From Bugula neritina (Eukaryota; Animalia; Bryozoa), in NCBI GenBank assembly GCA_964035545.1, contig OZ037766.1:29080640-29144639 (forward strand): a stretch of DNA of 64,000 bases, given 5' to 3'. The translations under genes were made by a program, and so were the position numbers. Positions 3,704-21,395 of the stretch are shown piece by piece (position 1 is the stretch's first letter; each line of letters begins with the position of its first letter). The notes beneath the pieces were generated by a model. It was not told the origin of the DNA, ran no database searches, and saw only the letters and a program-made list of their open reading frames with translations.

Positions 3704-6700
3704 ATGCTTTGCCGATACTTGTGGATATTTTCGTTACAGCTCGGAGTATCTTTCTCTGTCAGAGGTTAGTGAGTATTTCAGTGTTAGTCTTGCTTCTTGA
3801 TGTACATTTCTACTTATCCTATAGAATAAAACTAATATGCGTGTATTCTTGAGTAGAAGAGACGGAATAGATTGATGTCTAGCATGATTTCTGTCTGCTT
3901 CTGTTCACTATATTTGTTAGTTCTGTCAGCATTAAAACCTTTTCCTAGCATTCTATTCTGATGCTGGCAAGACATGGTCTGGTATAGTGAAATTACTTAT
4001 AATATAGACCAGCATTTGGGAGCAGCCGTAGTCTAGGGGTTAAAGGGCAAGGGTCAGTGGTCGGATCCCCATTAAAGGTCATTGGTGATGCTAGGAAGGG
4101 CATCCTGTGCCACATATTATGATTGAGTCCTCAGTTTGCTTTAAGAACATTTTCCATCAGGGGTTCTCACAGGGATGGTGACTATACTCCAGCATCTCCC
4201 AAATAGGAATCTTTCAACTGTAGCTCTATTTTGTATTAAAAAGACTTTACAACTAGTTTTAATGCACACGGGTGTTGTCAAGTGATGGTGTGTGTGTCAC
4301 AGTAGATAACATAATATCTGGTAGCATAAAACTATTGCACACTATGACACAATTTCAGTGGTTTTTTTTTTGCATAGTAACAGGGCTCAAGCTATGAAAT
4401 GTTAGTGAATTATCCTGCCCCACCCTCCACTCTTGATACAATCTGTAGACCCTTTACTGACTCATTTCATATTCCGATGGCTGCTGTCAACTAAGCAGTG
4501 TGGAATTGTGGGCTGACTAATGAAACAGCAGATTTATGCAGTCACACCCAAGTTTATGTAAACATGAGCTGTCTAATCATCAACGAGCCTTGAGTGTTTG
4601 TTTCCACTACAAGTGCTATATTGTTGATAAAACTGTGTGCTTTTCATTTGTGATTCTAATTATCCCATTGAAGTTATAAAAAAAGTTAATTTTTATACCT
4701 TGTTCATATTCAAATTGATTTTTGTTCCAAAGTTGCTTCATCAACTTTCTCCTGCTTACAGTAGTGCTGTCTAGAGTCAGCAAAGTGTCAAGTTAGTTTG
4801 TTATATTCAAGGTTTGAGTATCTAAACATAGTTTATAGTATTCAGTTTTATTATCAAGTTTATGCCCACATAGTTATCAGCTACCTCTCTCTGGTAGTCA
4901 GGTGAATACAAGGGACGATATTCTTATCTGGTGTTACCAGGCAGTAGCATTGTATGCAGTGCATTGTGGTTTATTATTGTAGTATACATATAATATTGTA
5001 ATATATTAATTGCATAGTGATATATGTGTTGCATAGTAATATATGTATTGCATTGCAATAATAGATGCATTGCATGGTAATATTTGCTTTGTATTATATT
5101 ATATATATAGTATTATAATTTGTGGTATATTATTATATAGTATTATATTATATGTGTTATGTTATAATGTCTATATTGTATTATAGTATATATATATGTA
5201 GTATATATTATATAATGATATTATATCACATGTATAGTATTATAGTATATGTATCGTATTATATTATAGCCTATGTGTTATAGTATATCATATGTATAGT
5301 ATTATACCATATGTATAGTATTATAATATATGTGTTCTAGTATTTTGTATGCACTTTTTGTTATCTTATTTATCATCATAGGAGTTACCTCACCACTGTA
5401 CTAATACTGAATAAAGTTTAGCCAATCAAAACTCACACCACCTCCAAACTTACTTGCATAGAGTTTCGACATCTATTTTAGAAATTCTGCAAGACTTCAG
5501 GACTACATCTTCTACCGGAGGCAGTTTTCTGCCAACTGATGTTGTGATTCTAGACAAGGATGGGGACGGTGTCAAGGTCAGTGTAATATAGAACTTAGTT
5601 TATTATGTGTAACAGCTTAGGCGGCTTGAAACCTACTAATTTGTAAGCAGGTTTCACAGCACATAATATAATGCTGTTAGTTATTAGAGGTTGCTGGTCA
5701 CAACTACGTTGCCATGGAAACGTTATGGCATAATTTTGTTGTAAGAAATACAAAATATTGTGACTTTTTGAGGCTGTCACGTGTAAATATGCCATAACTC
5801 TAAGTGGCTAGAGGCAGTAGATCTAAGTCTGTGTGAGTTTGTCATATAAAGTCTTGGTTGGAATTCTTCAGACTAGCTTTTTGGCTGCATTATTTTTAAC
5901 TACACCAACTTAATTATAGATTCGAAGATGTATATTAACAGCACAAGTGTCAAAGGTTATGTTCATATGTGTTAGATGCTCTCCAGACAAAAACTTTACT
6001 TAGCAATTCTGTGTGGGAACTAATAACTAACTGAAGCTCTTTATTAAATCCTGCCGACAGTTTCAATAGTTATTATGTCTACTACTTCACAAGGTTTGTA
6101 AGATCTGGTTCTAATATAAACATCAGTTTTTTGTTATTTAGCCTGTGGTGGAAGAATTGAGCAACAACATCTTGCTGAGAATAAACACCATGCCAGGCTT
6201 TACTGACCCTAATGCCCCGAATCTAAAAGAAGACAACTACATCTTCCTCCCTTATATAGCCAACCCGACAGGAAACAGCATGGTACGACTGGAGTTCACC
6301 TTCTCTCATGTCGCGTCTTGTCCAACGTACAGCCATCCTTCACCTGTTCAATGTAAAGATTCCATCACAATGGCACTAGTGAGCACAACTCCAACAGAGG
6401 ATGTTGCGTAAGTTTATATATTATAATATATATAGTAGGTTGATATACTGTATGTAGGCTTATGTACTATTTGTAGGTTTATATATTATGTATAGTAGGT
6501 TTATGTATTATGCAGTAAGTTTATATATTATACAGTAGGTTTATATACTATACAGTAGGTTTATATACTATACAGTAAGTTTATATACTATACGTAGGTT
6601 TATATACTATACAGTAGGTTTATATACTATACAGTAGGTTTATATACTATACAGTAGGTTTATATACTATACGTAGGTTTATATACTATACAGTAGGTTT

Positions 6701-9304
6701 ATATACTATACAGTAGGTTTATATACTATACGTAGGTTTTATATACTATACAGTAGGTTTATATACTACACGTAGGTTTTATATACTATACAGTAGGTTT
6801 ATATACTATACAGTAGGTTTATATACTATACAGTAGGTTTATATACTATACAGTAGGTTTATATATTGTATTTATAGACATATACTACTCTATATCCCAT
6901 CTACTTCTTGTAAACTTTGTGGCTATTTTTCCATGTTTCGGTCCCTTCTAAAATAATTTATTAGCATCATGGCTAATGCAGGCCTCTCGGTGCTCTTTGT
7001 AAACATTTGCCTAAAGCATTTTGACTCATAAGAATTTGGATATATTTGTTTCACATTGTATGAATTCACTCTATGAACTCAAACTAGCCAACTTTACCAC
7101 TAGGTGTGCGCATGTGCGCATGTGTGTGTGTATAAATGCTATTACTCATGCCTGCTGCCGTTGATACAGAAACATAGATGTGCCAGGGTCAGCACTATTC
7201 ACCGAGGTTCTTGCTGACGGGACTGACAAGGTTGAGAATTTACACATCAACTTTCCAAGTAGTACCACCGGTATGTGTGCCTCTACTTCTATTACTACTT
7301 TACTCTCTGCACATGACTATGTTTCTACTGTATTGATCTAAAAGTTCATAAGACTTCAAGTAAAATTTATAAGGCAAATATTTCTATTAGAAGCATGATT
7401 AATATCACTGAAAATTTATTTATTCAAAAAATGATAAATAACTTTGACAAATTTTTGATTTTAATGAAATAAATTATTGATGCTGCCATTATTTAAATTA
7501 ATTATCAAAACTGTCACTGTTAGTGGGCTACTTTACTTTGCATGTTGCCAAAGTTGTGTTATAGACAACAGTCCTATCAAGTTGAAGAGGTAAAGCTAGA
7601 TTCTAAGTTATTTCCTGTATCTACACTACGTATCTTGTATCTACACTACCTATCTTGTATCTACACTACCTATCTTGTATCTACACTACCTATCTTGTAT
7701 CTACACTACCTATCTTGTATCTACACTACCTCAATTTTCTGCTGATTAGGTTATAGGTTGGCGATACATGACGAAGGTTCCAGCTACCTTATCAAGCTTC
7801 TAACTATTTCCAGTTATCACTGTGAATACATCCCCGGACCCTACACCTTGCCTATCACTTGTCCCAACTCTCCAGCTAGTAACAATGTCTCTCCCACTGT
7901 ACAATGTAAGCATTCTGTCAGTCTGCATACAACTGAGTTTATCATATTGATTAACCTATCTGGTGGCTAAAGTGTAATGAGTGGAAAAGTTGGTGATTTT
8001 AGCTCTTAGTTTGAGGCTCAGCGAATGCATACTACAGCCTTACTAAAATCTTTAGTTTGGTTCTTCAACTTTTGCATTGCAAAACGGACTGGTTATTTAG
8101 TTTGAATTTTTATTTAATCGAGTCTCTTTTTAAACTGATTAATAACTTATAACCAACTTCTCAAACGAGTAAACTCTTAGACATTTTGCAACCAACTGAG
8201 AGTTATTTCGCCTTGTTACAGCCACGTGTTATATGACTAGCATGATTATTGGCTATTATTGCATGTTTATGCTGTGAAGCTTATTTCATGGTATAAGATG
8301 TACTAAACTAACTTTTCACTTAAGGATTAGCATGCGGTATGCACCTCACTACAACATCTGGTATCTAGTATTATTAACTGTTCTGTCACCATGATATCTG
8401 ATTGCTGACTCTACTTTGTACAGGCAGCTGCGCTAGCAACAGCTCTCCTACTGATGGAAAATCCTTCATAGCTGAGGAATGTGTGTACAACACAGCAGCT
8501 GAGACTGCTGACTTTACTCGGGCAGCGTCTAGTGCTGGTGTCAGCTGTTCATGTGATCCTGGTTTCACCCTCGCTGGTACTGGCGCTGCTCCCAGGTCCT
8601 GTGCAGGTAGGAGTTGTGAGTTTGTCTCGGGGGGGATAACTCTGTGCTGTTCACTTTGGGTTTGTGTCTGTGTGAGAAAGACATCCGATATCTCAACTAC
8701 GCAGGCGTTCTATGACTTTTAATCTTAATCTTTGATTTTACCTGAGGTGTGAGGTAACTGGATTTCAAACCATTGAGCTTTAGCAGAAAGAAGTCAGATA
8801 TAAGCTCAATTCTGTTAGGTTTAGTTTTATCTTATCACTTATGACTTGTGACCATGCTACTGCTATCTGGCTATATCTTTATTCTTACTGGTTGTTTTAA
8901 ATGTTGTAAACATTAACAGCTTCAATATAACTTGTATTTAAGTTTCATCTCAAATATCTAAATGAGTAATATAAGCTTGTCTTTTAGAGGTCACCACTAT
9001 GTCACCACCCCCAAGACCTAGTAGTACTAGTAGTAAGGGTGGGTTGGGGTCGTCCCATCCTCCTAGTACTGGAACTACTACGCATGATATACTTGTAGTG
9101 ACTACTACAACGGCCCCTCCTCTAACATCTGGCAGCAGTAGCGGCAGCAGCAGTGGTGGCGGGGGTTCAACCCCTGTCCCAACCACCAAGAAAACGTCTG
9201 TTGCTAATACGCCAACCACCACGACAGAATGCAGTCATGCAAGTCATGTGGTGTACAGCTGGACATTGCTGATGGTGGCTATGGCTGTGGTGCTACAGTG
9301 GTAA
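3704..9304 (+). CDS. Kinase-less, probably GPI-anchored Eph-receptor-ectodomain-like protein (~424 aa)
   Basis: Phase-consistent GT-AG exons: 3704-3764, 5422-5576, 5920-5955, 6142-6407, 7170-7270, 7750-7905, 8424-8606, 8988-9304. Signal-peptide-like start MLCRYLWIFSLQLGVSFS. Eph LBD-like motifs in order: EDNYIFLPYI, VRLEFTFSHVASC, QCKDSITMAL, GYRLAIHDEGSSYLIKLLTISSYHC. Cys-rich CSCASNS...CSCDPGF...C, then an S/T/G stalk, then CSHASHVVYSWTLLMVAMAVVLQW-stop. Confidence 0.75.
4020..4186 (+). mobile_element. tRNA-derived SINE copy (degenerate)
   Basis: Shares the head gagcagccgtagtctaggggtta, the core ggtcattggtgatgctaggaagggcatcc and the tail ttctcacagggatggtgactata with the copies at 37460 and 38744. 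Confidence 0.75.
4975..5345. repeat. Degenerate AT-rich tandem/low-complexity repeat
   Basis: Runs of tattgcatag and tatagtattata variants in the intron upstream of exon 5422. Confidence 0.7.
6408..6870 (+). repeat. 20-bp minisatellite (cagtaggtttatatactata)n, about 20 copies
   Basis: Direct inspection. The array begins at the splice donor gtaagtttatatattata. Confidence 0.95.
7616..7731 (+). repeat. 20-bp minisatellite (tatctacactacctatcttg)n, 5-6 copies
   Basis: Direct inspection. The array ends about 20 nt before the acceptor at 7748-7749. Confidence 0.95.
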
Positions 9305-10842
9305 CTTCCGTAAGGTGGGTGAAGTTTTTACTCTGTCTTATGTTGGTAATTCTATGGTGAACTAAATTATTTGCCTGCAAGAAAAATAGATTATGTGGAG
9401 ATGAGAAGTGAAACACTCCTCATTCAACATGTTTTCAATTTTAAGTCTTCAGTGACATCTTCAGATTCTATAGAAATATTTTCTGATAGTGTTGGTACAT
9501 TTCAAGTCATTTCGAAACGATTGCATCATTACAGCAAGGTGATTATATTAATTAGCACTATTCGTTTGAAAAGCAATAAAATCTTTAAATTTGGAACCCA
9601 TTAAGTTGAAACATCAGCTTTTGCTAGTGAATGAATATTCTGTGTATTTGTAGATTTCCACGCCGTATTCTTGTCTACTCAGGAGTTTTCCTCTCTACAA
9701 TTCTTATATCCACTATCTACTGCTAGTCACACTATTACTACAAAATTTTGATGAATTATATGGCAAATAATGCGTTGAACTTATTATATGCATTAGCTAA
9801 GTTTATTCGTTATTCAATTGTTTAGTTTTTTATTTTAATAGTCAGTTTTTTTTATAAAAGCTCGCTGGAATCAACTAAGTCACAAATCAAAAGGATTACA
9901 GCATTAAGCTTGGAAAAATATTGCTCAATTTTTTCTCTGAATGAAAATGTAAATTATTTTGTCCTTGAACTTTTATATTGCATGAATATTTATACATTTA
10001 CTGAGTTGCAAAGAGTAATCTATATTTTTATAATAAAGCTGTTTTATTCTGTCAGGCCAAGTTATTATACAGTTGGTTAGTGGAAGCCAAAGCTATAGTT
10101 TCATTAATTCACGAACTCCATTTTGTTTTGTTTTTGTAACTTAGGAACTAGTATACAAAACCACTACAGCATTAGTATACAAGATTGGAAATGAAAATAA
10201 CTAACTTTAGATGTCATATAAACTGACTATCATATAATGGGATTGTTACCAGCAAAAAGCATTTGCATATATATATTGTTATAGAATTATTATGACATGT
10301 ATTATTATGATTTGTTTTTGCCAATTATAATATCTGTAATGAGACGGTAAGTTGATGAAATTGCTGAAGGGGAAAATTACGAGTTTTTAGTAGCAAGCTC
10401 CAAATTTATTTTATATTTTTAAAATCATCTGAACATGCATCTAAGAGAAGAAAAAGCTGTGAATTAATTACATGGCTCAGTAGGTAGGTATAAAAGCAGC
10501 ATTTTTTGTTAAGTATTATAAATAATTTTAAACAGCATGCGTACTAAATTGTTGAATCAAATACCAAAAATGATTTATCTCCCAGGTTTGAGATGGCTGG
10601 GCGACACAAGGCATCTATAAGGTAAGGCAAATCCAAATATATCAAAGGAAAAATTGAAAGGTATCTGCTATGGGAATGAACAAATGATACAGTTTAGTAA
10701 ATGATTAGAATGCTGAAAAACATTTAACCAATTATATTGCAATAGCATAATTGACAATAAGTTACGTAACAAAGTATAATGTACTATTATATTATTAAGT
10801 TGTTATAATACAATATATTCAGTTGGATATTTACACTGACTA

Positions 10843-13061
10843 CTACCAATCATCATCGCTGTCAGTGTCATCACCTCTGCCTCGTATGTTCTTTTTCTGA
10901 GAATCAAACAAAACATTTTTAGACTTAGAGGCATTCTCTGAACCCGGGGGCGTGAGCAGATCCCCGCTATAGTTGATAATATCAGCACGAGCTATTCTCC
11001 ATTCCATCATTTCGGTTGAGAAGTCGTCTACTCCACCCAAATCATCAAATCCCACAATGAAATCAACCTAAAGGAAGACATCAGCCAAAAATATCAAAAC
11101 AATGAGTTTATAATCAACATCCGATTAAAGCAGACCTATGCAAATGTAAACCAATCAAGTTCAGCAAAAACACTCAAGAAGCTAAAACCTATTTTGAATG
11201 CCAAGTCCTTCAACTGTCGTACTAGTTCATTGCTATGGTTTACCTGAACATCTGCTACTGTAGGTAAGTTACTTTCATATTTAGATGTGCATGCATGTGT
11301 AAGTAATGAATGTATATATGTACATGTTATAGTAGCGGGTCAGTGATTATCCTACAGGGTTAGATATTTCTGTAGGTTCAGTAACAACTAATACACCGTG
11401 TAAATAAATCCTTCATAGGGAAAGTAATATGATTATAAATCCTGCGATTTAATATTAGTATGGTATACCTCACACAAAATCAAGTGAAGTATTATAGTAC
11501 CAGAGACTACCTACAGTTTTATTGTCTCGGAGTAGGACTAGGGTGGGTAGCACCCTAACTTTCAATCTATCTGTCAGGAACTTTGACTTCTCCGCATCTA
11601 TCTTCATAAACTTGCATTCCAAGTGCTGAGGGGCTAAGATTTCTAAATGTTTATCTACGATTTTGCATCTAAAACAGTAAAAAAGACTTGATTAAAGAGT
11701 CCGAGCAAGTTAGGTTGGGTAGATGTAGCTTTCGTTATCAAGGCTATAGGTCTGTCACTAAACTTCAATTCTCCATTCTTGTGAAACCTGTTACTTGAAC
11801 AAAAAGTAGGGACGTGATTAGAGAGTCCCATAGTTTATCTCTAGATTCTAGAGGGTAGATTTTTTCAACTACATTGAATTCGCATAAAACTGAGTAACTT
11901 CATTAGGCAAAGGTCAAACAGCTTAATATCACTAGATTATGGAAATGTTGATTTTCTCACCTTTGCACAGTGTAACACTGGTAACCAAAAACTCTATACA
12001 AGATGCTCACCCCTGACCCGTTGTAGCCTCATAGTCCTATAAACTGACACTCACCGCATTGTGGCTTCTCTGTAGAAATGACAGACTACATTTTTGCTCT
12101 TTTTACACTCGTCAAAGAATTCCTTTTCACCAGGAACCTCAAAGTACCTGAAATAAATTGGAAATATTACATAAGAGAGGTGATGCAAGCAGTTATAGCA
12201 TCAAAATTAGAAAATCAAAACTTTTTTGTGCTAATTTTAATTTAAATCATATTTTTGAAGACAAAAAAAATTTTGAGTCAAAAAATCTTAGTCTATAAGG
12301 GAAAGACAGAGCAACACTAATATTGTACGTACTATTGAATGTCAGAAACTAAAGGGAGTAGAAATGGTGGCCCTAAGGATACACTTACTTGCCGTGGCCG
12401 TTAGCTCTCCAGGTATTCTTTTGGTCTTCAGCTTTCTTCATAGCTGCAATTCTCTTCTCTCTTAGCAACTACGAACATTAGCCAGTGTGAAGTTTTATAA
12501 ATTAGACTCTGCTCTGTTATCACAATGAAGTAGGTTTATTTTCTTTTGAAAACTTTTTTATATAAAAAAAAAATTTTAAATAAAATAATTTAAAATATAG
12601 ATAATACAGCACAAAATGACACCCACCTAAACTTTATAAAATGATGCACTCAGTTAAGACAGGGATGGTTAATTCATAGTCATATAACACAGTTTGTTAC
12701 AACAACATAACAAGTTCAATTGACCGGCAGTTCTAATGAAGTAAATACATTGTTTTTTATACAAAAATTGTTTATTCATTATTGTCTTGCCGAAACATAA
12801 AAGTTTTGGTTATCAAAAATATAGTTACATTAAACCACAGACTTGGTAACATCAAATAGGTTAGCAAACCCACCACTTGGTGAAAAAAATATCTATACAT
12901 GAATACAAATGTAAGGTTGCTCGCATTCATGAAATGAATAAAATATTAAATACCTCTAATTCATCCTTGTCCATTTTATCTAGTCTATCTATCTCACTGT
13001 CAAGTTGCTGCTCAACCATAGAGGCAGCAGCCATTAGTTGTTGTTCAAGAACTTGCTCCAT
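10843..13061 (-). CDS. TXNDC9: Thioredoxin domain-containing protein 9 (phosducin-like family), 219 aa
   Basis: Exons 13061-12954, 12468-12389, 12147-12055, 11668-11515, 11067-10843. Translation includes MEQVLEQQLMAAASMVEQQLDSEIDRLD...LREKRIAAMKK...[30 protein letters not shown]...CKIVDKHLEILAPQHLECKFMKIDAEK...VLPTL...DFIVGFDDLGGVDDFSTEMMEWRIA...DSDDDW. Confidence 0.95.
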
Positions 13062-14962
13062 TCTGAGAGATATGCTCCTTGATTCTAAAAATACCAGACT
13101 TTTAGCACTGGGTGTGATAGCAAATTTATAAATAAATTTATGATAATATTTACTAATCAAACCAACAATTTTATAGTAATCTTTAGAGTTACAAGCAAAA
13201 GAGTTGCTTTAATTAAAGTAGAAGCAAAATTCAGACAGAACAATGTAAGTAACAAAACTTGTTATAACACAATGCATTAGAATTTAAAAAATATCTTTTG
13301 TAAAGTAAAATGAGGCATGACAAAATTAGCTATTGTATTTGATGAGAAGCTAAAAAACTTGAAAAGACACATTTCATATATCCTCTCGTCCCATCAGCTG
13401 CTGATAATTACTATTATCAATCTTGACCATTATGTTTTTCATAATTTCTTACTATCTCCATTTGTATAATATGTATTTATATTGTGAAGAGACTCGTGCA
13501 CAAAGTGATATGCTGATATATATTTTAAGATTTTCCAATTCCAATGTATATTTATATATTTATTATAAATAAAACTATTAATATACTATTTATTATTAGT
13601 ATTATCAATTGTGATTGAGATTAAGAAACAACCGTAAGAGCATCAGACTATGCAACAGCAGGCAATAGTATAGATTCTAGGTACTATTATAACTAAAACT
13701 CCACAACCATAATGCATAGCAAAGCTTTCGTTCCCAATATAGCTAGCTTTTTGCAAATAGCTAAGCTTTATGTCATTATAGGATAGACACTTTTATGTTT
13801 CTTGTTTATAAGACTACTTATAGGAGTTTGAATGAAAGTGAGCTGTAAGTTTTTGATGCTGTGTCATTCAATTTTGTGCCCACACTAATTTATTCTTACA
13901 ATAAATGCTATTAGACCACGTACAACTAACTACTACGTTACAAGGATGAACATTACTATAACTATGTAAGTATATATTATAGTAGTATGACCACCAAGAG
14001 CAACTATAAGTATAGCTAGTATTTGTATACAGCATAGGAGTGATTCCAGAAATTATTATGATTGTTATTTTCTATTAAATCATTATACCTTTACAAGTGT
14101 ATGCATAGCATCATCAGTGAGATTACATTTACTATAAGTAGCAGCAATAACAATAAGTACTAACTGTACAATATAATTAGTGTACTGGTGTTGTACTTTT
14201 ATTTACAGCCGTATCACTATCAGTGTCACTGATTAATAACTAAATGATATTAATATTATTAAAAATGACTTACACAAAACTCAAAAGTAAAATGTAATAA
14301 CTGTTAGCATCACTAATATTATTACTAATAACATGATTATACATATAGTTATGCTTTTATCTACTTCTACTTCTACTTATTACTTATACTTTATAGTACT
14401 AGTTTCATTTATACTTATTAATTACCTAATCCTATACTTCATGAGAAATGACAATTTATTAATTATTTTGCTCTACTATTATTAATACTAGAGTACTACT
14501 AGTAGTACTAGTAGTAGTCATAGTCATACTGATACGCATATTTAATTTTACAGTATAACACTAGCTTAATAAGCATACCAAATTATAATGTTATACTTAT
14601 TCTAAAACTAAAACCAGATCAAAACGTTTGATTTTATCGTTGTTATTATTAACTTTAGTAGAAGTATTTACTTTTAGCCTTAGGTTAAGGTAAATAAAAT
14701 ATAATTAATATTATTTTTTATATTATAAATATAATTATTATAATTATCGTTATTATTGTGATTTTTGATTGTGTTGCTAACACCACGAGTATGACTAACA
14801 CTAACAGTAACACTAACTCTAGTTTCTAAGAGTAAGTCTAAGTGATACTCATACTCATACTGATAACATTAACTGATAGTCATAGTGAATAGTATAAATT
14901 AAACTAAAATATACTTAATCTTATACTTATACTTATACTTATAGTTATAGTTATATATTTAC

Positions 14963-16374: not shown

Positions 16375-19300
16375 ATGTCTAGTGTTAAGAATAAAACAAC
16401 CGAAAAAGAACAATTGACACCAGCGTCACATAATGATCACGATGCACTGTACCGGAAGATTCGTATTCTTAGAAAGAAGTTAAAGCAAGTTGAAAACTTA
16501 AAGCTTTTACCTAGAAAGTTGAATGAAGAAGAAACTCGTAAAGTTAGTAAGCTAAGGCTACTAAAAGTCTCTGTGTGCCTTCAGGATAATAGTTAATAGT
16601 CCAAGTTTATAGCTGCAAACTTATGCAAACCAGTTGTGTCATTCATGTATGTCAAAATCGTTTATTTCACTACTTTTTTTGTACAAGTCATTGATATACT
16701 TAGGAAGTTATCAGTGCCATAGCAAATTGAATAAAAATAAGTGATCAGGGCCTCTTTGATAGACTCCTGTTTCCAATGGGTGTATTACTATTACAGTAAT
16801 ATTACTTTCTGTCAAAGACAGCCCAATGCATGTAGTCATACTTTCAACTCTTTTCAGATTCAGAGACAAAATGAATTCAGAGTTGAATTGTTGGATCTGT
16901 TGGCGCAGCAGAATAATTTAATAACTGAAGCAGCTCCAGTTCTAGAAAAGACTCAAGATGTTGAGCCTCCAAGTCCACAGGTACTGAAGTTGCATTTATA
17001 CCTCTGCTAAAAAAAGTACCGAGTTTAAGTTAATAATGCTTGTCTGGGTACCCCATTATAGTCAAACTTAAAATCATTGAAATCATATTGATGCAGAAGC
17101 TCACTTTCTAAAATTGAAATTTGACTTGCCTAATCGCTATTTGATGCCCTTTGTAAACGTCGTGAATTAGTGAGATTGACAGCATAAAAGCGACAATTGA
17201 GAAGGCGTAGGCGATATAATTATTAACATATAAGTACGCCATTTAATCGTCAAAGTCATAACTAAATTACTCCTTTTGAGTAATATTCTGAAATCGGCCG
17301 ATTAAGTTATCACAGTACAAAAATTCCTACGAGTGGCTTTTACAATGCAATGCAACTCGGAGAAATTTCAACCCGGCTGAATTGAATTTCTGATCGAAAA
17401 TCTTGAAGGTATAAAGGCAACTTGAAGCAGTATTGACATAGAATAACTTTAAGGTGTTTTTTGTAAAAGTTGCAACATGTATTGTCTGGAAAAGCTGTAT
17501 TAAAATTTTGTCACTACAACTGTTGAATATAAAAGTATTAGATGTTTGGGAATTTTTATCATAAGTCTGCTAATAAAGTTGCTAATGCGAGATTTTTTTT
17601 TTAATTTAAGCACTTGAGTTACAATGTATGTTGAAAGTAGACTTATTGCATATTTGTTGCTGTAGCAATGTGTGAAACATTTCAGAAATTGCCCCCAAAG
17701 GATAAACAGTTAGAACCCAAGAAGAATCTTCAAAATGTCTTGAACTCAAAGTATGTTTTATCAAATTGGTTGACGTGCTTCTAGATATTTCTTCTGCTAT
17801 AAGTTTTGCTTATAGTCTGCTGTTCAAGCTGCAGTTTCTAATCTAAATGTGGATAACAATTGTCAGTCTAAATTGGAAAGGTGTGACTGTGCTACTGATT
17901 TTACTGCTGGGGATGCATATTTCATTTTGTGAGTAAAACTAATGTGAATGAAACTTCTAATTACAGTGACTTGATAGAACTTATGGGTAATGTAGACTTT
18001 TTTGTGATGACTAGAAGCCATGTCAATATGCTCCTAACACTTGAATAAGTTTCTCCAAATCTTTGGCTATAGCTGCTGGATTTATACTTGAATTAAAATA
18101 AGTTGACTTATTTGTAAGTTATTTTTGCAATAATTTGAATATTTAGTCACCATAAATTATGTGCATTTCATAGACTTTGAAATTTGTATGTGACAGAGGA
18201 GACAGTGAAAGCAGATCAGATGTGAAAGTTAGTCCTGCACCTTCTGCAAGTAAGCAGGTAGAATCCAAAGTGAGCAAACCAGATCCGTTACAGGACATCA
18301 AAAAGGAATGGGCTACAAAATACTTTGAACTTTTAGAGCTGCCTGGACATACTGATCTGGTATTGTGTGTAGATATCAATGCGACCTATATTGTGTCTGG
18401 CAGGTGAGTTATGTAGACATCAATGTACTGCTGAATTTTTTTTTAAATATTTAAAATCAGTAGTTTTTTAACTCAGGAATACTTGCTGTTACGTACTATC
18501 AAGCTATTTGTAGCAATATTTATGGAATGTCTCTAATGTATAATTTAATTTTTTCCAGTCGTGATACATCAGTGAAACTTTGGAATGTTTTGTCTGGAGA
18601 GCTCATACACAACTTCGGAGGTCATACTGGTTTTGTTTCCTGCGTAAAACTGTTGGAGCTTTCTAGTGAGTTGAAAACTCTTTAATATACAGTCAACTAT
18701 TTCTACAAGTCCTGGTGGGAATCGCTTAATTTTTATGAACCAAAAAAAAGAAAAGAACTAAGCATTGATAGGTTGAAAATTCAAATTGCTTAAACATTCA
18801 AATATGTAATATATAATAAATAAATAGTTTATAGGTTAGTTTTTAGGAAGTCCAGAACATTTACTTAAAATGCTGTCATTTTTCTTGCATGTTTGTAGTT
18901 TTTTTTAAATGAAATATATCTGCATTTAAAAACAAGTAGCAAAATGTTAGTTGAAATTAATTCAAATATTTTGAAAGTTTCTTTTCGTTAAATCCTTGGC
19001 ATAGCATGGTTTTAATTAACTTTTCACATTAGAATATTAAAAAATGTAAGGTAATGGCCAATGTTTATAAACAATAATATAAAATAATATTAATAAAAAG
19101 TGCTTTGGGAGAAATTCTCACATGACACCTTTTCATCTCTACTTTTTGTTTTTCAAACAGATGAAAATTCAGGTGATGTGAAGAGTGTTATAGCGAGTGG
19201 CAGTCATGACTGTTCCATAAAGTTCTGGGATGTACATACAGGTAAGGCACAATATTACTACATACAGGTAATATACAGTATTACTATATACAGGTAATAT

Positions 19301-21395
19301 ACAGTATTACTATATACAGGTAATATACAGTATTACTACATACAGGTAATATAGAATATTACTACATACAGAGTATGGGTAATATACAGTATTACTACAT
19401 ACAGGTAATATACAATATTACTACATACAGAGTACGGGTAATATACAGTATTACTACATACAGGTAATATACAATATTACTACATACAGAGTACGGGTAA
19501 TATACAATATTACTACATACAGAGCACAGGTAATATACAGTGTTACTGCATACAAAATAAAGTAATATACAGTGTTACTACCTGCAGAATACATGTAAAG
19601 AGCACTGCTTGTGCTTTCTGTTTTATTATGCCACTATTGTTTTGTCATGCAGAAATTGTAAAAATTGAAATAAATATCAAATTAGCATTTCAGTTCTAAA
19701 ATTTTTTGCTGTTTCAAAATATTTTCAGCTGTTGACTTGAGACTATAGTTTGCTTCTTATTGTGGAGTTTATGTGCTGCTTTTCTATCCTAATCGGCAGA
19801 CTGTCCTATATTTTACATGTAGTCTACCCACGTCACTTTGTAACTGACATTATCTCTTGTGTCATTCTTATTTAGGTAGTCTGATAAAGGAGTTCTACGT
19901 GTACAACTCTGTATTATGTATGACAACCATGAACGAGGGAAAGTATCTAGTGGCAGGTCTAGACGGAGGTAAAATGGAGCTCTATAACATCAACACTGGT
20001 ATCACACCCGCCTTGTCTTACAGTATTGAAACTGAGGCTATTTCCTGTCTGTCAGTGAGTATCTATTATTTCCAACAATTGTTTGTTGGTTTTCTTTCAA
20101 AAATTTATCCAATTTTGTTTGCGTTGTCTATAGGCTTGCACTATTTATAACATTTGTGAGGATTTTTAGTGTGATGGGAATAGCCTAGCTGTGGGAGGCA
20201 GCGATGGTCTAGTCACCATCTTAAAGTTTGAAGAAGATGCCTTTCAGTGTCTGTACTCCCTCGATGAACCTCTAGCTAGTCCCGTGAAAAGTATCTCGTT
20301 GGTAGGAAATGATGTAATTCTCGGTGATGATGGTGCCAATATAAAAGTGCTGCGCTGGAAATCAGGTGCACATAATTCAACTGTTTGTGCAATCTCAATA
20401 CTTATAAATTTATGGTATGAAAAAGCACGATGCACGTAGCAAAAGTTGCACAACTCTTTTCAGTAGCATGCATTTTGCAGTTGGACTTTCAGACTTTTGT
20501 ATAGGTTATATTAGAGTTGATGCTCACCTCTGATTGGCTGAGCTTTACGTGATTGTTAACTACAAGTTAGCACTATAATAATGTACTACCTGTTCATAGG
20601 CAATGTTTCTTGCTTGGCCAATCACCATTCAGAGTTTGGTGTGACCGATGCTCTATGCAAACATGGGAATTATCTACTCTCTTCAGCTTATGACTATGAC
20701 AATGGTACTGGATATCTTAATGGTAAGTTAAACTATTCATCATTTGTGCTATCCGCTTTTTTGATTTTAAGAAAACCTATTACAAGAGTAAGCGATGCCT
20801 ATCACTGCATTGGAAATTGTAATATATTTTATAGTTTCAATGAGAGTTCATTGGCAAAACCTAATTGATGTTCACTTATTTGTTTAATTTACAGTTCGAG
20901 ATAGAAATGGGCCTCAGTATAGTTATATATCCTCAATACTAGATCCTGATATCACTCACATACTTAGTTTGGCAGCTGTGACCTTGACCAGCAGTCAAGG
21001 TCATAAGCCATTGATGTCACTAGTAACTGGGGGAATGATATTGGTGCTTTGGAGAGAAGATCCATCAAGGTATATTTATGGAAATAGTGAAGTTGTGAGA
21101 GGTTGAAAGTATTTTTGCAAGTTCAAGTGTTACTTGTTCTAATAAATATACACTATTGTACCAACTTAACAATGCTCATGCATCATGTTGTAAATATCCA
21201 ATCAAAAGTATAATTATTTTCAGAAACGCTGAAAGTGTCAAGTGTATTAACAAAAGACTTCTACTAGCTGAGGATGAAATGGATTCTGATAACGAAGATT
21301 CAGATTTAGAAGACAACTCTGACTTGTCATTTGATGATAGTCTAGAAAGTGATTTAGCAGAGAATGCTAGTGGCTGGTGGTGCAACCTTCTGTAA
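16375..21395 (+). CDS. WD40-repeat protein (~531 aa) with an N-terminal PYM/eIF2A-C-like basic helix, an acidic tail and a CaaX box (CNLL)
   Basis: Exons 16375-16542, 16858-16980, 17686-17750, 18197-18403, 18559-18665, 19161-19241, 19876-20054, 20170-20365, 20600-20722, 20895-21069, 21224-21395, all phase-consistent. WD repeats include GHTDLVLCV..IVSGSRDTSVKLWN and GHTGFVSCV..IASGSHDCSIKFWD. Confidence 0.88.
19232..19590 (+). repeat. ~26-bp minisatellite (tacatacaggtaatatacagtattac)n that copies the exon end and splice donor
   Basis: The first unit is the exon 6/intron junction TACATACAG|gtaa. Later units retain ACAGgtaa. Confidence 0.93.

Follow-up and report, generated by a model that had tools for sequence, protein, structure and literature searches.

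A conserved gene of Bugula neritina for a kinase-less, putatively Eph-derived surface protein with a GPI-type C-terminus

Eph/ephrin signalling is bidirectional, and most known Ephs that lack a kinase are splice isoforms or engineered decoys. Alternative splicing yields kinase-less or secreted Eph isoforms such as truncated EphA7, and the known kinase-less isoforms act as dominant-negative or decoy forms. In structures of the EphA2 ectodomain, both ephrin binding and the Eph-Eph contacts of clustering fall to the ligand-binding domain (LBD) and the sushi part. GPI-anchored decoys or co-receptors occur in other families, as in the case of TRAIL-R3/DcR1, GFR-alpha and CNTFR-alpha. Eph isoforms without the kinase domain have also been noted in the literature (PMC6993872), as have truncated or fragmentary Eph-like models in non-bilaterians and choanoflagellates, for example an LBD without a kinase in Salpingoeca urceolata (PMC6485061). 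A kinase-less, GPI-type Eph gene with the architecture described here was not found in the literature searched.

Judged from its sequence, the stretch at 3704-9304 (+ strand) of the window, the whole 64-kb stretch of DNA that was analysed, is a real, conserved gene for a secreted surface protein, probably of the lipid-anchored type. Like the canonical Eph of the same genome and the vertebrate EphA and EphB receptors, the predicted protein carries an LBD-type head at its N-terminus and the sushi part next to it, with collinear motifs; unlike them, it has no EGF-like part, fibronectin type III (FN3) repeats, transmembrane (TM) helix, kinase or SAM domain and escapes Pfam, has lost one canonical Cys and gained another, and combines a shorter head with a mucin stalk and a GPI-type tail. 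It shares with the kinase-less splice isoforms an Eph ectodomain without forward signalling, but those isoforms come from full receptor genes with canonical LBDs, whereas here a separate conserved gene carries its own stalk and lipid-anchor signal. As in ephrin-A ligands, a GPI-type signal would hold a globular head on the outer leaflet, and nothing would reach into the cytoplasm; however, ephrins are cupredoxin-like (PF00812), unrelated in fold and ancestry, and here it is the receptor side that bears the anchor signal. TRAIL-R3/DcR1, GFR-alpha and CNTFR-alpha likewise place a receptor ectodomain on the membrane without a signalling domain, but they belong to other protein families, and for the present protein a decoy or co-receptor role is putative. 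Finally, the Eph-like models of PMC6485061 also include an Eph-LBD-bearing protein without a kinase, but these are fragmentary transcript or gene models with no defined GPI-type architecture conserved between species.

The predicted gene comprises seven exons (the initial annotation had counted eight), all with GT donors and AG acceptors in compatible phases, which join into a single open frame of 392 aa. From N- to C-terminus this frame encodes a signal peptide, a head of ~180 aa, a Cys-rich module, an 81-aa Ser/Thr/Pro stalk and a hydrophobic tail running to the stop, a layout that agrees with the one originally proposed; all of the motifs quoted at that time are present in the exon translations. 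A convergent thioredoxin-domain gene on the minus strand, as first annotated, ends near 10843, ~1.5 kb downstream. The features are as follows:

3704-3764, + strand: exon 1, ATG and putative signal peptide (aa 1-20); GTTAGT donor, phase 1
5482-5576, + strand: exon 2, start of the LBD-like head with the V-V-I-L-D-K-D-G motif; AG acceptor, GTCAGT donor, phase 0
6142-6407, + strand: exon 3, core of the LBD-like head; D-N-Y-I-x-x-P-Y-I motif, Cys-x10-Cys loop
7170-7270, + strand: exon 4, middle of the LBD-like head; phase-1 donor inside a Gly codon
7750-7905, + strand: exon 5, end of the LBD-like head (G-Y-R-L-A-I-H-D-E-G ... Cys199) and a linker with Cys212
8424-8606, + strand: exon 6, Cys-rich module similar to the Eph sushi part (Cys-rich domain); phase-1 donor
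8988-9304, + strand: exon 7 (whole), stalk followed by tail; TAA stop at 9302-9304
8988-9232, + strand: exon 7, first part, mucin-like Ser/Thr/Pro stalk (aa 288-369)
9233-9304, + strand: exon 7, end, GPI-signal-like C-terminus and TAA stop; candidate omega site S370
9575-9580, + strand: polyadenylation signal AATAAA, 271 nt 3' of the stop (pattern search and sequence)

Conservation was assessed in the related contigs L010, L012, L013, L014, L016 and L017, and in the related sequences or lineages P0002 and P0003. Orthologues of exon 3 are 93%, 46% and 40% identical; exon 4 is 91% identical in L012 and conserved in L013; exon 5 is 41% identical in L013 and L010; and the orthologue of exon 2 (L016, near 4137-4226) keeps I-I-D-K-D-G and the phase-0 donor. 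The phases of exons 2-6 are identical in the L013 and L016 orthologues, and no orthologue of exon 1 was identified among the related contigs. The divergent orthologues are ~40% identical, yet they retain the exon structure and the GPI-signal-like tail. Because exons 2-6 and their phases are conserved in related contigs and dN/dS is 0.145, the exon pattern goes beyond chance; the gene is under purifying selection. Nucleotide identity reaches 92% in exons, as compared with ~81% over the whole aligned contig including introns. Sushi and EGF-like ORFs in L013:1-846 were rejected as extra N-terminal exons of the orthologue, because L016 and L017 part from L013 at the repeat L013:847 and carry the true exon 2. 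A decaying, functionless partial duplicate of an Eph gene could be expected to carry 5' Eph parts only and to be highly divergent, as seen here, but with a frame intact over seven exons at this dN/dS, and with architecture and splice phases kept in lineages just 40-46% identical, such a relic is scarcely credible.

The paralogue and orthologue search that had been proposed with the initial annotation thus yielded orthologues with the same exon phases and tail; within the animal's own genome, searches with exon 3, exon 5 and an exon-3 profile returned only the gene itself and did not retrieve the canonical Eph (a match on C9 was a low-complexity repeat). A search of representative sequences gave only three clusters of exon fragments, all from related contigs; it yielded no relative of full length or from another phylum. 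The gene is single-copy and lineage-restricted.

Evidence for the ancestry of the head and Cys-rich module comes from comparison with the genome's single canonical Eph (G000:C3:25027198-25042200). A family profile, with exons joined computationally, scored 29.1 bits against the canonical LBD plus Cys-rich part (nominal p 3e-11); composition-matched shuffles indicated that the HMMER p-values are ~20-30 times over-optimistic, and the p-value after this calibration was ~1e-9, with an alignment collinear over ~190 residues. Taken separately, the canonical LBD gave 13.1 bits (p 2.7e-6) and the Cys-rich part 13.7 bits. The Smith-Waterman score against the canonical Eph was 80, a value reached by 0/3000 shuffles (mean 34, sd 5.3), and a 40%-identical orthologue scored 82 (0/3000); for the LBD alone the signal was weaker, with 8/3000 shuffles reaching the score. 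At the level of single exons, hhalign matched exon 3 to canonical exon A (LBD; E 1.1e-4) and exon 6 to canonical exon D (sushi; E 3.3e-5), exon 5 versus canonical exon C being not significant (E 0.16). Canonical exons A and D were the best matches among 3781 ORFs once low-complexity and self matches were set aside.

The gene structures point the same way. Two introns are identical to those of the canonical Eph in both position and phase, a third is consistent and a fourth is 4 nt off. The first of the identical pair, in phase 1, interrupts the Gly codon before x-x-L-A-I and corresponds to the canonical B/C intron; the second follows a phase-1 donor two residues past the last Cys of exon 6, which is also its place in the canonical Eph gene. 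Exon 6 agrees in the first Cys-x16-Cys spacing of the sushi part with the canonical Eph, which also carries V-V-V-L-D at the place of V-V-I-L-D-K-D-G in exon 2. P-Y-I and L-A-I are common to the head and the canonical Eph of the same genome; vertebrate Ephs differ at these two sites. The head resembles a bona fide Eph LBD significantly and collinearly; this and the introns support homology to the canonical Eph in the LBD and in the sushi part of its Cys-rich domain, and the gene is very likely Eph-derived.

The Eph match put forward in the initial annotation therefore stands as homology by profile, exon-level hhalign and shared introns, but not as a match to Pfam: neither Ephrin_lbd (PF01404) nor Ephrin_CRD matched any exon of the window gene or its orthologues at E<=10, exon by exon, and in the control every canonical Eph exon scored (1.2e-9, 2.1e-5, 3.8e-5). 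Exon 6 drew weak cEGF and FXa_inhibition matches in Pfam and nothing stronger. A PF01404 scan of the animal's own genome found the canonical Eph only, with no match in the window; a weak match on C1 is spurious because it is full of stops. No candidates came from a word search, whether with exon 3 or with the canonical exon A. The PDB, searched by sequence and by profile, held no relevant match (a filamin match was due to chance), and exon 3 in the ESM Atlas gave low recognition and unrelated bacterial families, with no Eph. An Eph derivative can escape Pfam detection.

These database results are what one would expect if the head were unrelated to Eph, that is, if the motifs coincided by chance in some other beta-sandwich domain joined to a generic EGF/sushi-like module. 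A look-elsewhere effect also applies, because the Eph hypothesis was picked after the motifs had been seen, and phase-1 introns are common at the ends of Cys-rich modules. However, chance resemblance would have to account for the calibrated profile p-value and its collinearity, the replication of the Smith-Waterman result by the orthologue, the LBD-internal phase-1 intron at the identical codon and the top rank of canonical exons A and D, and we consider it very unlikely.

At the N-terminus, a hydrophobic core (aa 5-19, mean Kyte-Doolittle 1.43) comes after Met-Leu-Cys-Arg, with small residues at -3 and -1; by heuristic only, this is a putative signal peptide. The stalk, 60% Ser/Thr/Pro over 81 aa (aa 288-368) and mucin-like in its low complexity, directly follows the Cys-rich exon, with no FN3 between. 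Besides the N-terminus, the sole hydrophobic 19-mer lies in aa 371-392 and reaches the stop; its hydropathy is 3.14 (Kyte-Doolittle, aa 381-390), and the last 24 aa are without a charged residue. The frame stops right after this tail, so that the C-terminus resembles that of GPI-anchored proteins, hydrophobic to the stop and with no charged cytoplasmic tail, in this gene and in the orthologue. By eye, a candidate omega site can be placed at S370-H-A, followed by an 8-aa spacer and a short hydrophobic tail (12-13 aa); the last exon of the orthologue has a candidate S-G-A, also by eye, with a 7-aa spacer, 15 hydrophobic aa and the stop, and PTS-rich phase 1-1 exons lie at the place of the stalk. 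The GPI-type C-terminus that had been proposed is thus borne out as a GPI-signal-like tail that ends the gene and is kept in the orthologue, and the protein is probably GPI-anchored.

The signalling half of an Eph is missing. Canonical FN3, TM, kinase and SAM pieces found no similarity in the 64-kb window or in the orthologue contigs L013 and L014, in line with the earlier statement that no kinase exons are visible; tblastn with the canonical FN3 exons likewise found neither of the two repeats in these sequences, and the canonical EGF-like exon has no counterpart in the window or the orthologue contigs. The genome carries one canonical Eph as well as ephrin loci. A GTAACT at 9301 and an AG just 5' of the ATG could signify an incomplete gene model, with upstream coding exons or a splice to distant TM/cytoplasmic exons, in which case the tail would not be the true C-terminus. 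Yet the orthologue ends in a hydrophobic tail and stop without a consensus donor, AATAAA and the convergent gene follow the stop, no FN3, TM, kinase or SAM likeness occurs in the 64 kb, an in-frame TAA lies 18 nt 5' of the ATG and the signal peptide begins at that ATG, which makes truncation of the model highly improbable. The dedicated gene first suggested for this locus thus holds up, and the data support a separate gene predicted to be without EGF-like, FN3, TM, kinase and SAM parts.

We propose that the 5' exons of an Eph receptor gene gave rise to the present one. The LBD, a jelly-roll head of the ephrin-binding type, would have been retained along with the sushi part of the Cys-rich domain, and the EGF-like part, two FN3 repeats, TM helix, kinase and SAM domain would have been replaced by an O-glycosylation-type Ser/Thr/Pro stalk and a GPI-attachment-type signal. 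The mature protein would then sit on the outer leaflet with a glycosylated stalk and bind a partner without a forward kinase signal. Components of the Eph/ephrin contact system would be the likeliest partners, because it is through the LBD and sushi that Ephs bind ephrin and cluster with each other. As a result, ephrin may be sequestered, reverse-only signalling may be triggered, or canonical Eph clusters may be diluted.

The head itself is very divergent in sequence. It is shorter than the canonical LBD by ~20 aa near the N-terminus (our own count) and ~12 aa mid-head (alignment), and the Cys of the canonical I-C-S-V stretch, placed by eye, is missing; because of these changes, and because orthologues are only ~40% conserved, an unchanged ephrin pocket is argued against. 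In EphA2, an Arg two residues ahead of the first loop Cys contacts ephrin; at this position the present head has Ala and P0002 has Gln, but the P0003 lineage has Arg. An Eph-derived head with a new function might explain this extreme divergence, the two deletions and the changed Cys pattern: recognition of ephrin or Eph would have been lost, and the product would be a GPI-anchored, mucin-stalked glycoprotein for adhesion, recognition or protection with some other ligand. But exactly the LBD and sushi have been retained, under purifying selection, the genome's ephrins and single Eph are candidate partners, and another ligand is suggested by no result; we regard such a change of function as rather unlikely.

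An Eph-derived, kinase-less, GPI-type surface protein that binds a partner of the Eph/ephrin system is the best explanation overall, and we give it about an even chance. That the protein acts within Eph/ephrin signalling is somewhat less likely. More doubtful still is the fullest version of the proposal: no earlier gene would then have been devoted to an Eph with a lipid anchor and no kinase, and the protein, mirroring ephrin-A, would bind ephrins or co-cluster with the single Eph to give reverse-only or damped contact signalling, the gene being apparently fixed and conserved in one invertebrate lineage.

If true, a conserved stand-alone gene for Eph ligand binding and clustering on a GPI-type anchor would be a natural experiment in which the forward and reverse arms are uncoupled, and a receptor ectodomain would have taken on the role of a surface modulator or the recognition of a new ligand. 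Such an Eph derivative is unseen by Pfam, and domain-based surveys of Eph evolution would therefore miss genes of this kind.

The gene studied, at 3704-9304 on the + strand, resolves into seven exons with GT donors and AG acceptors, polypyrimidine tracts at the acceptors and phases that are compatible throughout; the initial annotation had counted eight.

Features of the window (positions in the window)
3704-3764, + strand, exon 1
4998-5333, AT-rich repeat arrays, intron 1
5482-5576, + strand, exon 2
6142-6407, + strand, exon 3
6429-6865, 20-bp minisatellite, intron 3 (22 copies, 90% match)
7170-7270, + strand, exon 4
7616-7731, 20-bp minisatellite, intron 4 (5.8 copies, 98% match)
7750-7905, + strand, exon 5
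8424-8606, + strand, exon 6
8988-9304, + strand, exon 7
10843-13160, - strand, convergent thioredoxin-domain gene (Pfam Thioredoxin 2.5e-4 on one exon)
16375-20150, + strand, WD40-repeat gene, further downstream

When joined, the exons give a single frame of 392 aa whose sole stop is at its end, with an in-frame TAA 18 nt 5' of the ATG and an AATAAA 271 nt 3' of the stop. The protein comprises a signal-peptide-like N-terminus, a head of ~180 aa, a Cys-rich module, a stalk of 81 aa (60% Ser/Thr/Pro) encoded directly 3' of the Cys-rich exon, and a hydrophobic C-terminal segment; the final 24 aa of the protein are all uncharged. All motifs quoted in the initial annotation were found in the translations, and its placement of the TXNDC9 end ~1.5 kb downstream agrees with the thioredoxin-domain gene ending there on the opposite strand. 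The intron-3 minisatellite array is also found, at a different length, in the contig of a close relative (L012). Within intron 1, the region at ~4010-4100 resembles by eye the head of a tRNA-derived SINE; ARAGORN made no tRNA call on it.

The profile of the Eph ligand-binding domain (LBD), PF01404, did not match the head, either exon by exon or in a scan of the animal's own genome, which gave no signal inside the window. Database searches were run per exon, the joined sequence being compared only with sequences fetched for the purpose. Exon-by-exon Pfam searches of the gene and its orthologues returned only weak cEGF-type matches on exon 6, and sequence and profile searches of the PDB, as well as the ESM Atlas, gave empty or irrelevant results. 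As a positive control, single exons of the canonical Eph of this genome were detected readily (Ephrin_lbd 1.2e-9, 2.1e-5 and 3.8e-5; Ephrin_CRD 1.3e-5). Because each canonical exon scores singly whereas the window exons do not, the gene is not an ordinary member of the Eph family.

The canonical Eph (C3:25.027-25.042 Mb; G000:C3:25027198-25042200) encodes an LBD, a Cys-rich domain, two FN3 domains, a TM helix, a kinase and a SAM domain; it is apparently the single such gene in the genome, and its LBD is spread over at least four exons. Direct comparison with this gene, by three methods, supported an Eph-type head, which Pfam, PDB and the ESM Atlas had failed to detect. With hhalign, the exon-3 family matched canonical exon A (E 1.1e-4) over 33 columns around D-N-[YW]-I-x-x-P-Y-I, and the exon-6 family matched exon D, which encodes the sushi part of the Cys-rich domain (E 3.3e-5). 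The match of exon 5 to exon C, taken singly, was not significant (E 0.16); the two align end to end with no internal gaps and share L-A-I, a Gly and the terminal Cys column. For Smith-Waterman and HMM comparison the exons of each gene were joined. The window protein scored 80 by Smith-Waterman (shuffles: mean 34, sd 5.3) and a 40%-identical orthologue scored 82, in each case with 0 of 3000 shuffles as high. The family HMM gave 29.1 bits against the canonical ectodomain (nominal p 3.4e-11) in a single collinear alignment of ~190 residues, to which both halves contribute (LBD by itself 13.1 bits, Cys-rich part by itself 13.7 bits); the top of 5000 composition-matched shuffles reached 11.8 bits and the reversed sequence -1.1 bits. 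Judged by the shuffles, HMMER p-values are ~20-30x too optimistic here, and extrapolation from the shuffle tail gives a p of roughly 1e-9, which still survives correction for the Eph hypothesis having been picked after the motifs were seen. Among 3781 ORFs compared, the best non-self matches were canonical exons A and D, behind one low-complexity repeat.

Intron positions provide evidence of homology that is independent of sequence scores. Both genes carry a phase-0 intron 28-30 residues before D-N-[YW] and share two introns of phase 1: one interrupts the Gly codon right before x-x-L-A-I, the other the codon that lies two residues past the final Cys encoded by the sushi exon. Ahead of the sushi exon their introns sit 4 nt apart, and each gene has one private intron. 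Within the sushi part, the first Cys-x16-Cys spacing, an Asn at +3 and an Asp at +8 are common to both. The window protein also shares P-Y-I and L-A-I with its own genome's canonical Eph, at two sites where the vertebrate Eph consensus differs, which suggests a duplication within the lineage of this genome.

Exon-level searches found the gene in single copy in its genome. With exon 3 as phmmer query against 1.84 billion representative proteins, only three clusters of relatives were recovered (93%, 46% and 40% identity), all of them ORF fragments from short genomic contigs; sample labels (BRYA16 ... METAG) hint at a bryozoan host for some of these. Orthologues of exons 2 to 6 with identical splice phases lie on the fetched contigs, and are ~40% identical across the head. 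Exons 3-4 differ from the closest relative, L012, by 18 synonymous and 10 non-synonymous changes (dN/dS 0.145), with nucleotide identity of 92% in exons and ~81% over the entire aligned contig, introns included.

As the initial annotation had noted for the kinase exons, the remaining Eph parts are missing: tblastn with the canonical pieces found no EGF-like exon, FN3, TM, kinase or SAM in the 64-kb window or the orthologue contigs. Of the GPI-type tail also proposed there, the hydrophobic end at the stop codon stands and recurs in the orthologue; the omega site is a candidate placed by eye, S370 (S-H-A), from which 8 spacer residues lead to a strongly hydrophobic run that reaches the stop. In the last exon of the orthologue (contig L013, about 5885-6038) we read, likewise by eye, S-G-A, then a spacer of 7 residues and a run of 15 hydrophobic ones up to the stop, with no consensus donor there. 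By this heuristic, the matching tail therefore indicates an architecture conserved across ~60% sequence divergence. The initial stretch of that contig (L013:1-846) contains ORFs that resemble sushi and EGF modules (142-300 and about 640-770). We rejected it as part of the orthologue: it is unlike contigs L016 and L017, the break falls at a dispersed repeat, and it is probably a chimeric join or structural variant.

Compared with the canonical LBD, the head is ~20 aa shorter near the N-terminus (by count of translations) and ~12 aa shorter in the middle (by alignment). By eye, the Cys of the canonical I-C-S-V stretch has no counterpart in the head, and an additional, conserved Cys stands 13 residues past the LBD-terminal one; this loss and gain may reflect a re-paired disulfide. 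Two residues before the first loop Cys, in exon 3, the canonical Eph and the lineage of fragments P0003, P0005 and P0006 have Arg, the window gene Ala and fragment P0002 Gln; the equivalent Arg of EphA2 presumably contacts ephrin. A protein acting purely as an ephrin decoy should have preserved its pocket; with a head this divergent, it is far from certain that the ligand has stayed the same. Among the roles considered, a new ligand for the head ranks a close second.

Two evolutionary surveys (PMC6993872, PMC6485061) report splice isoforms that lack the kinase, along with Eph-like models that are truncated or fragmentary. A stand-alone gene for a GPI-type Eph ectodomain appears in neither survey, and targeted phrase searches of the literature found none.

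Read from its sequence, the product is an Eph-derived, kinase-less, mucin-stalked protein predicted to enter the secretory pathway and to end in a tail-anchor signal. A GPI link would hold it on the outer leaflet, where it could bind a partner without forward signalling. It is through the LBD and the sushi part that Ephs bind ephrins and cluster with one another, as seen in EphA2 ectodomain structures. Ephrin-domain loci in this genome include one clear and one weaker instance (G000:C4:7332216-7332350; G000:C5:8886401-8886541). Because LBD and sushi are both kept, and at least one ephrin locus accompanies the one Eph in the genome, we tentatively rank first, among the single roles considered, a modulating effect on Eph/ephrin contact signalling, which might take the form of sequestration, reverse-only signalling or cluster dilution.
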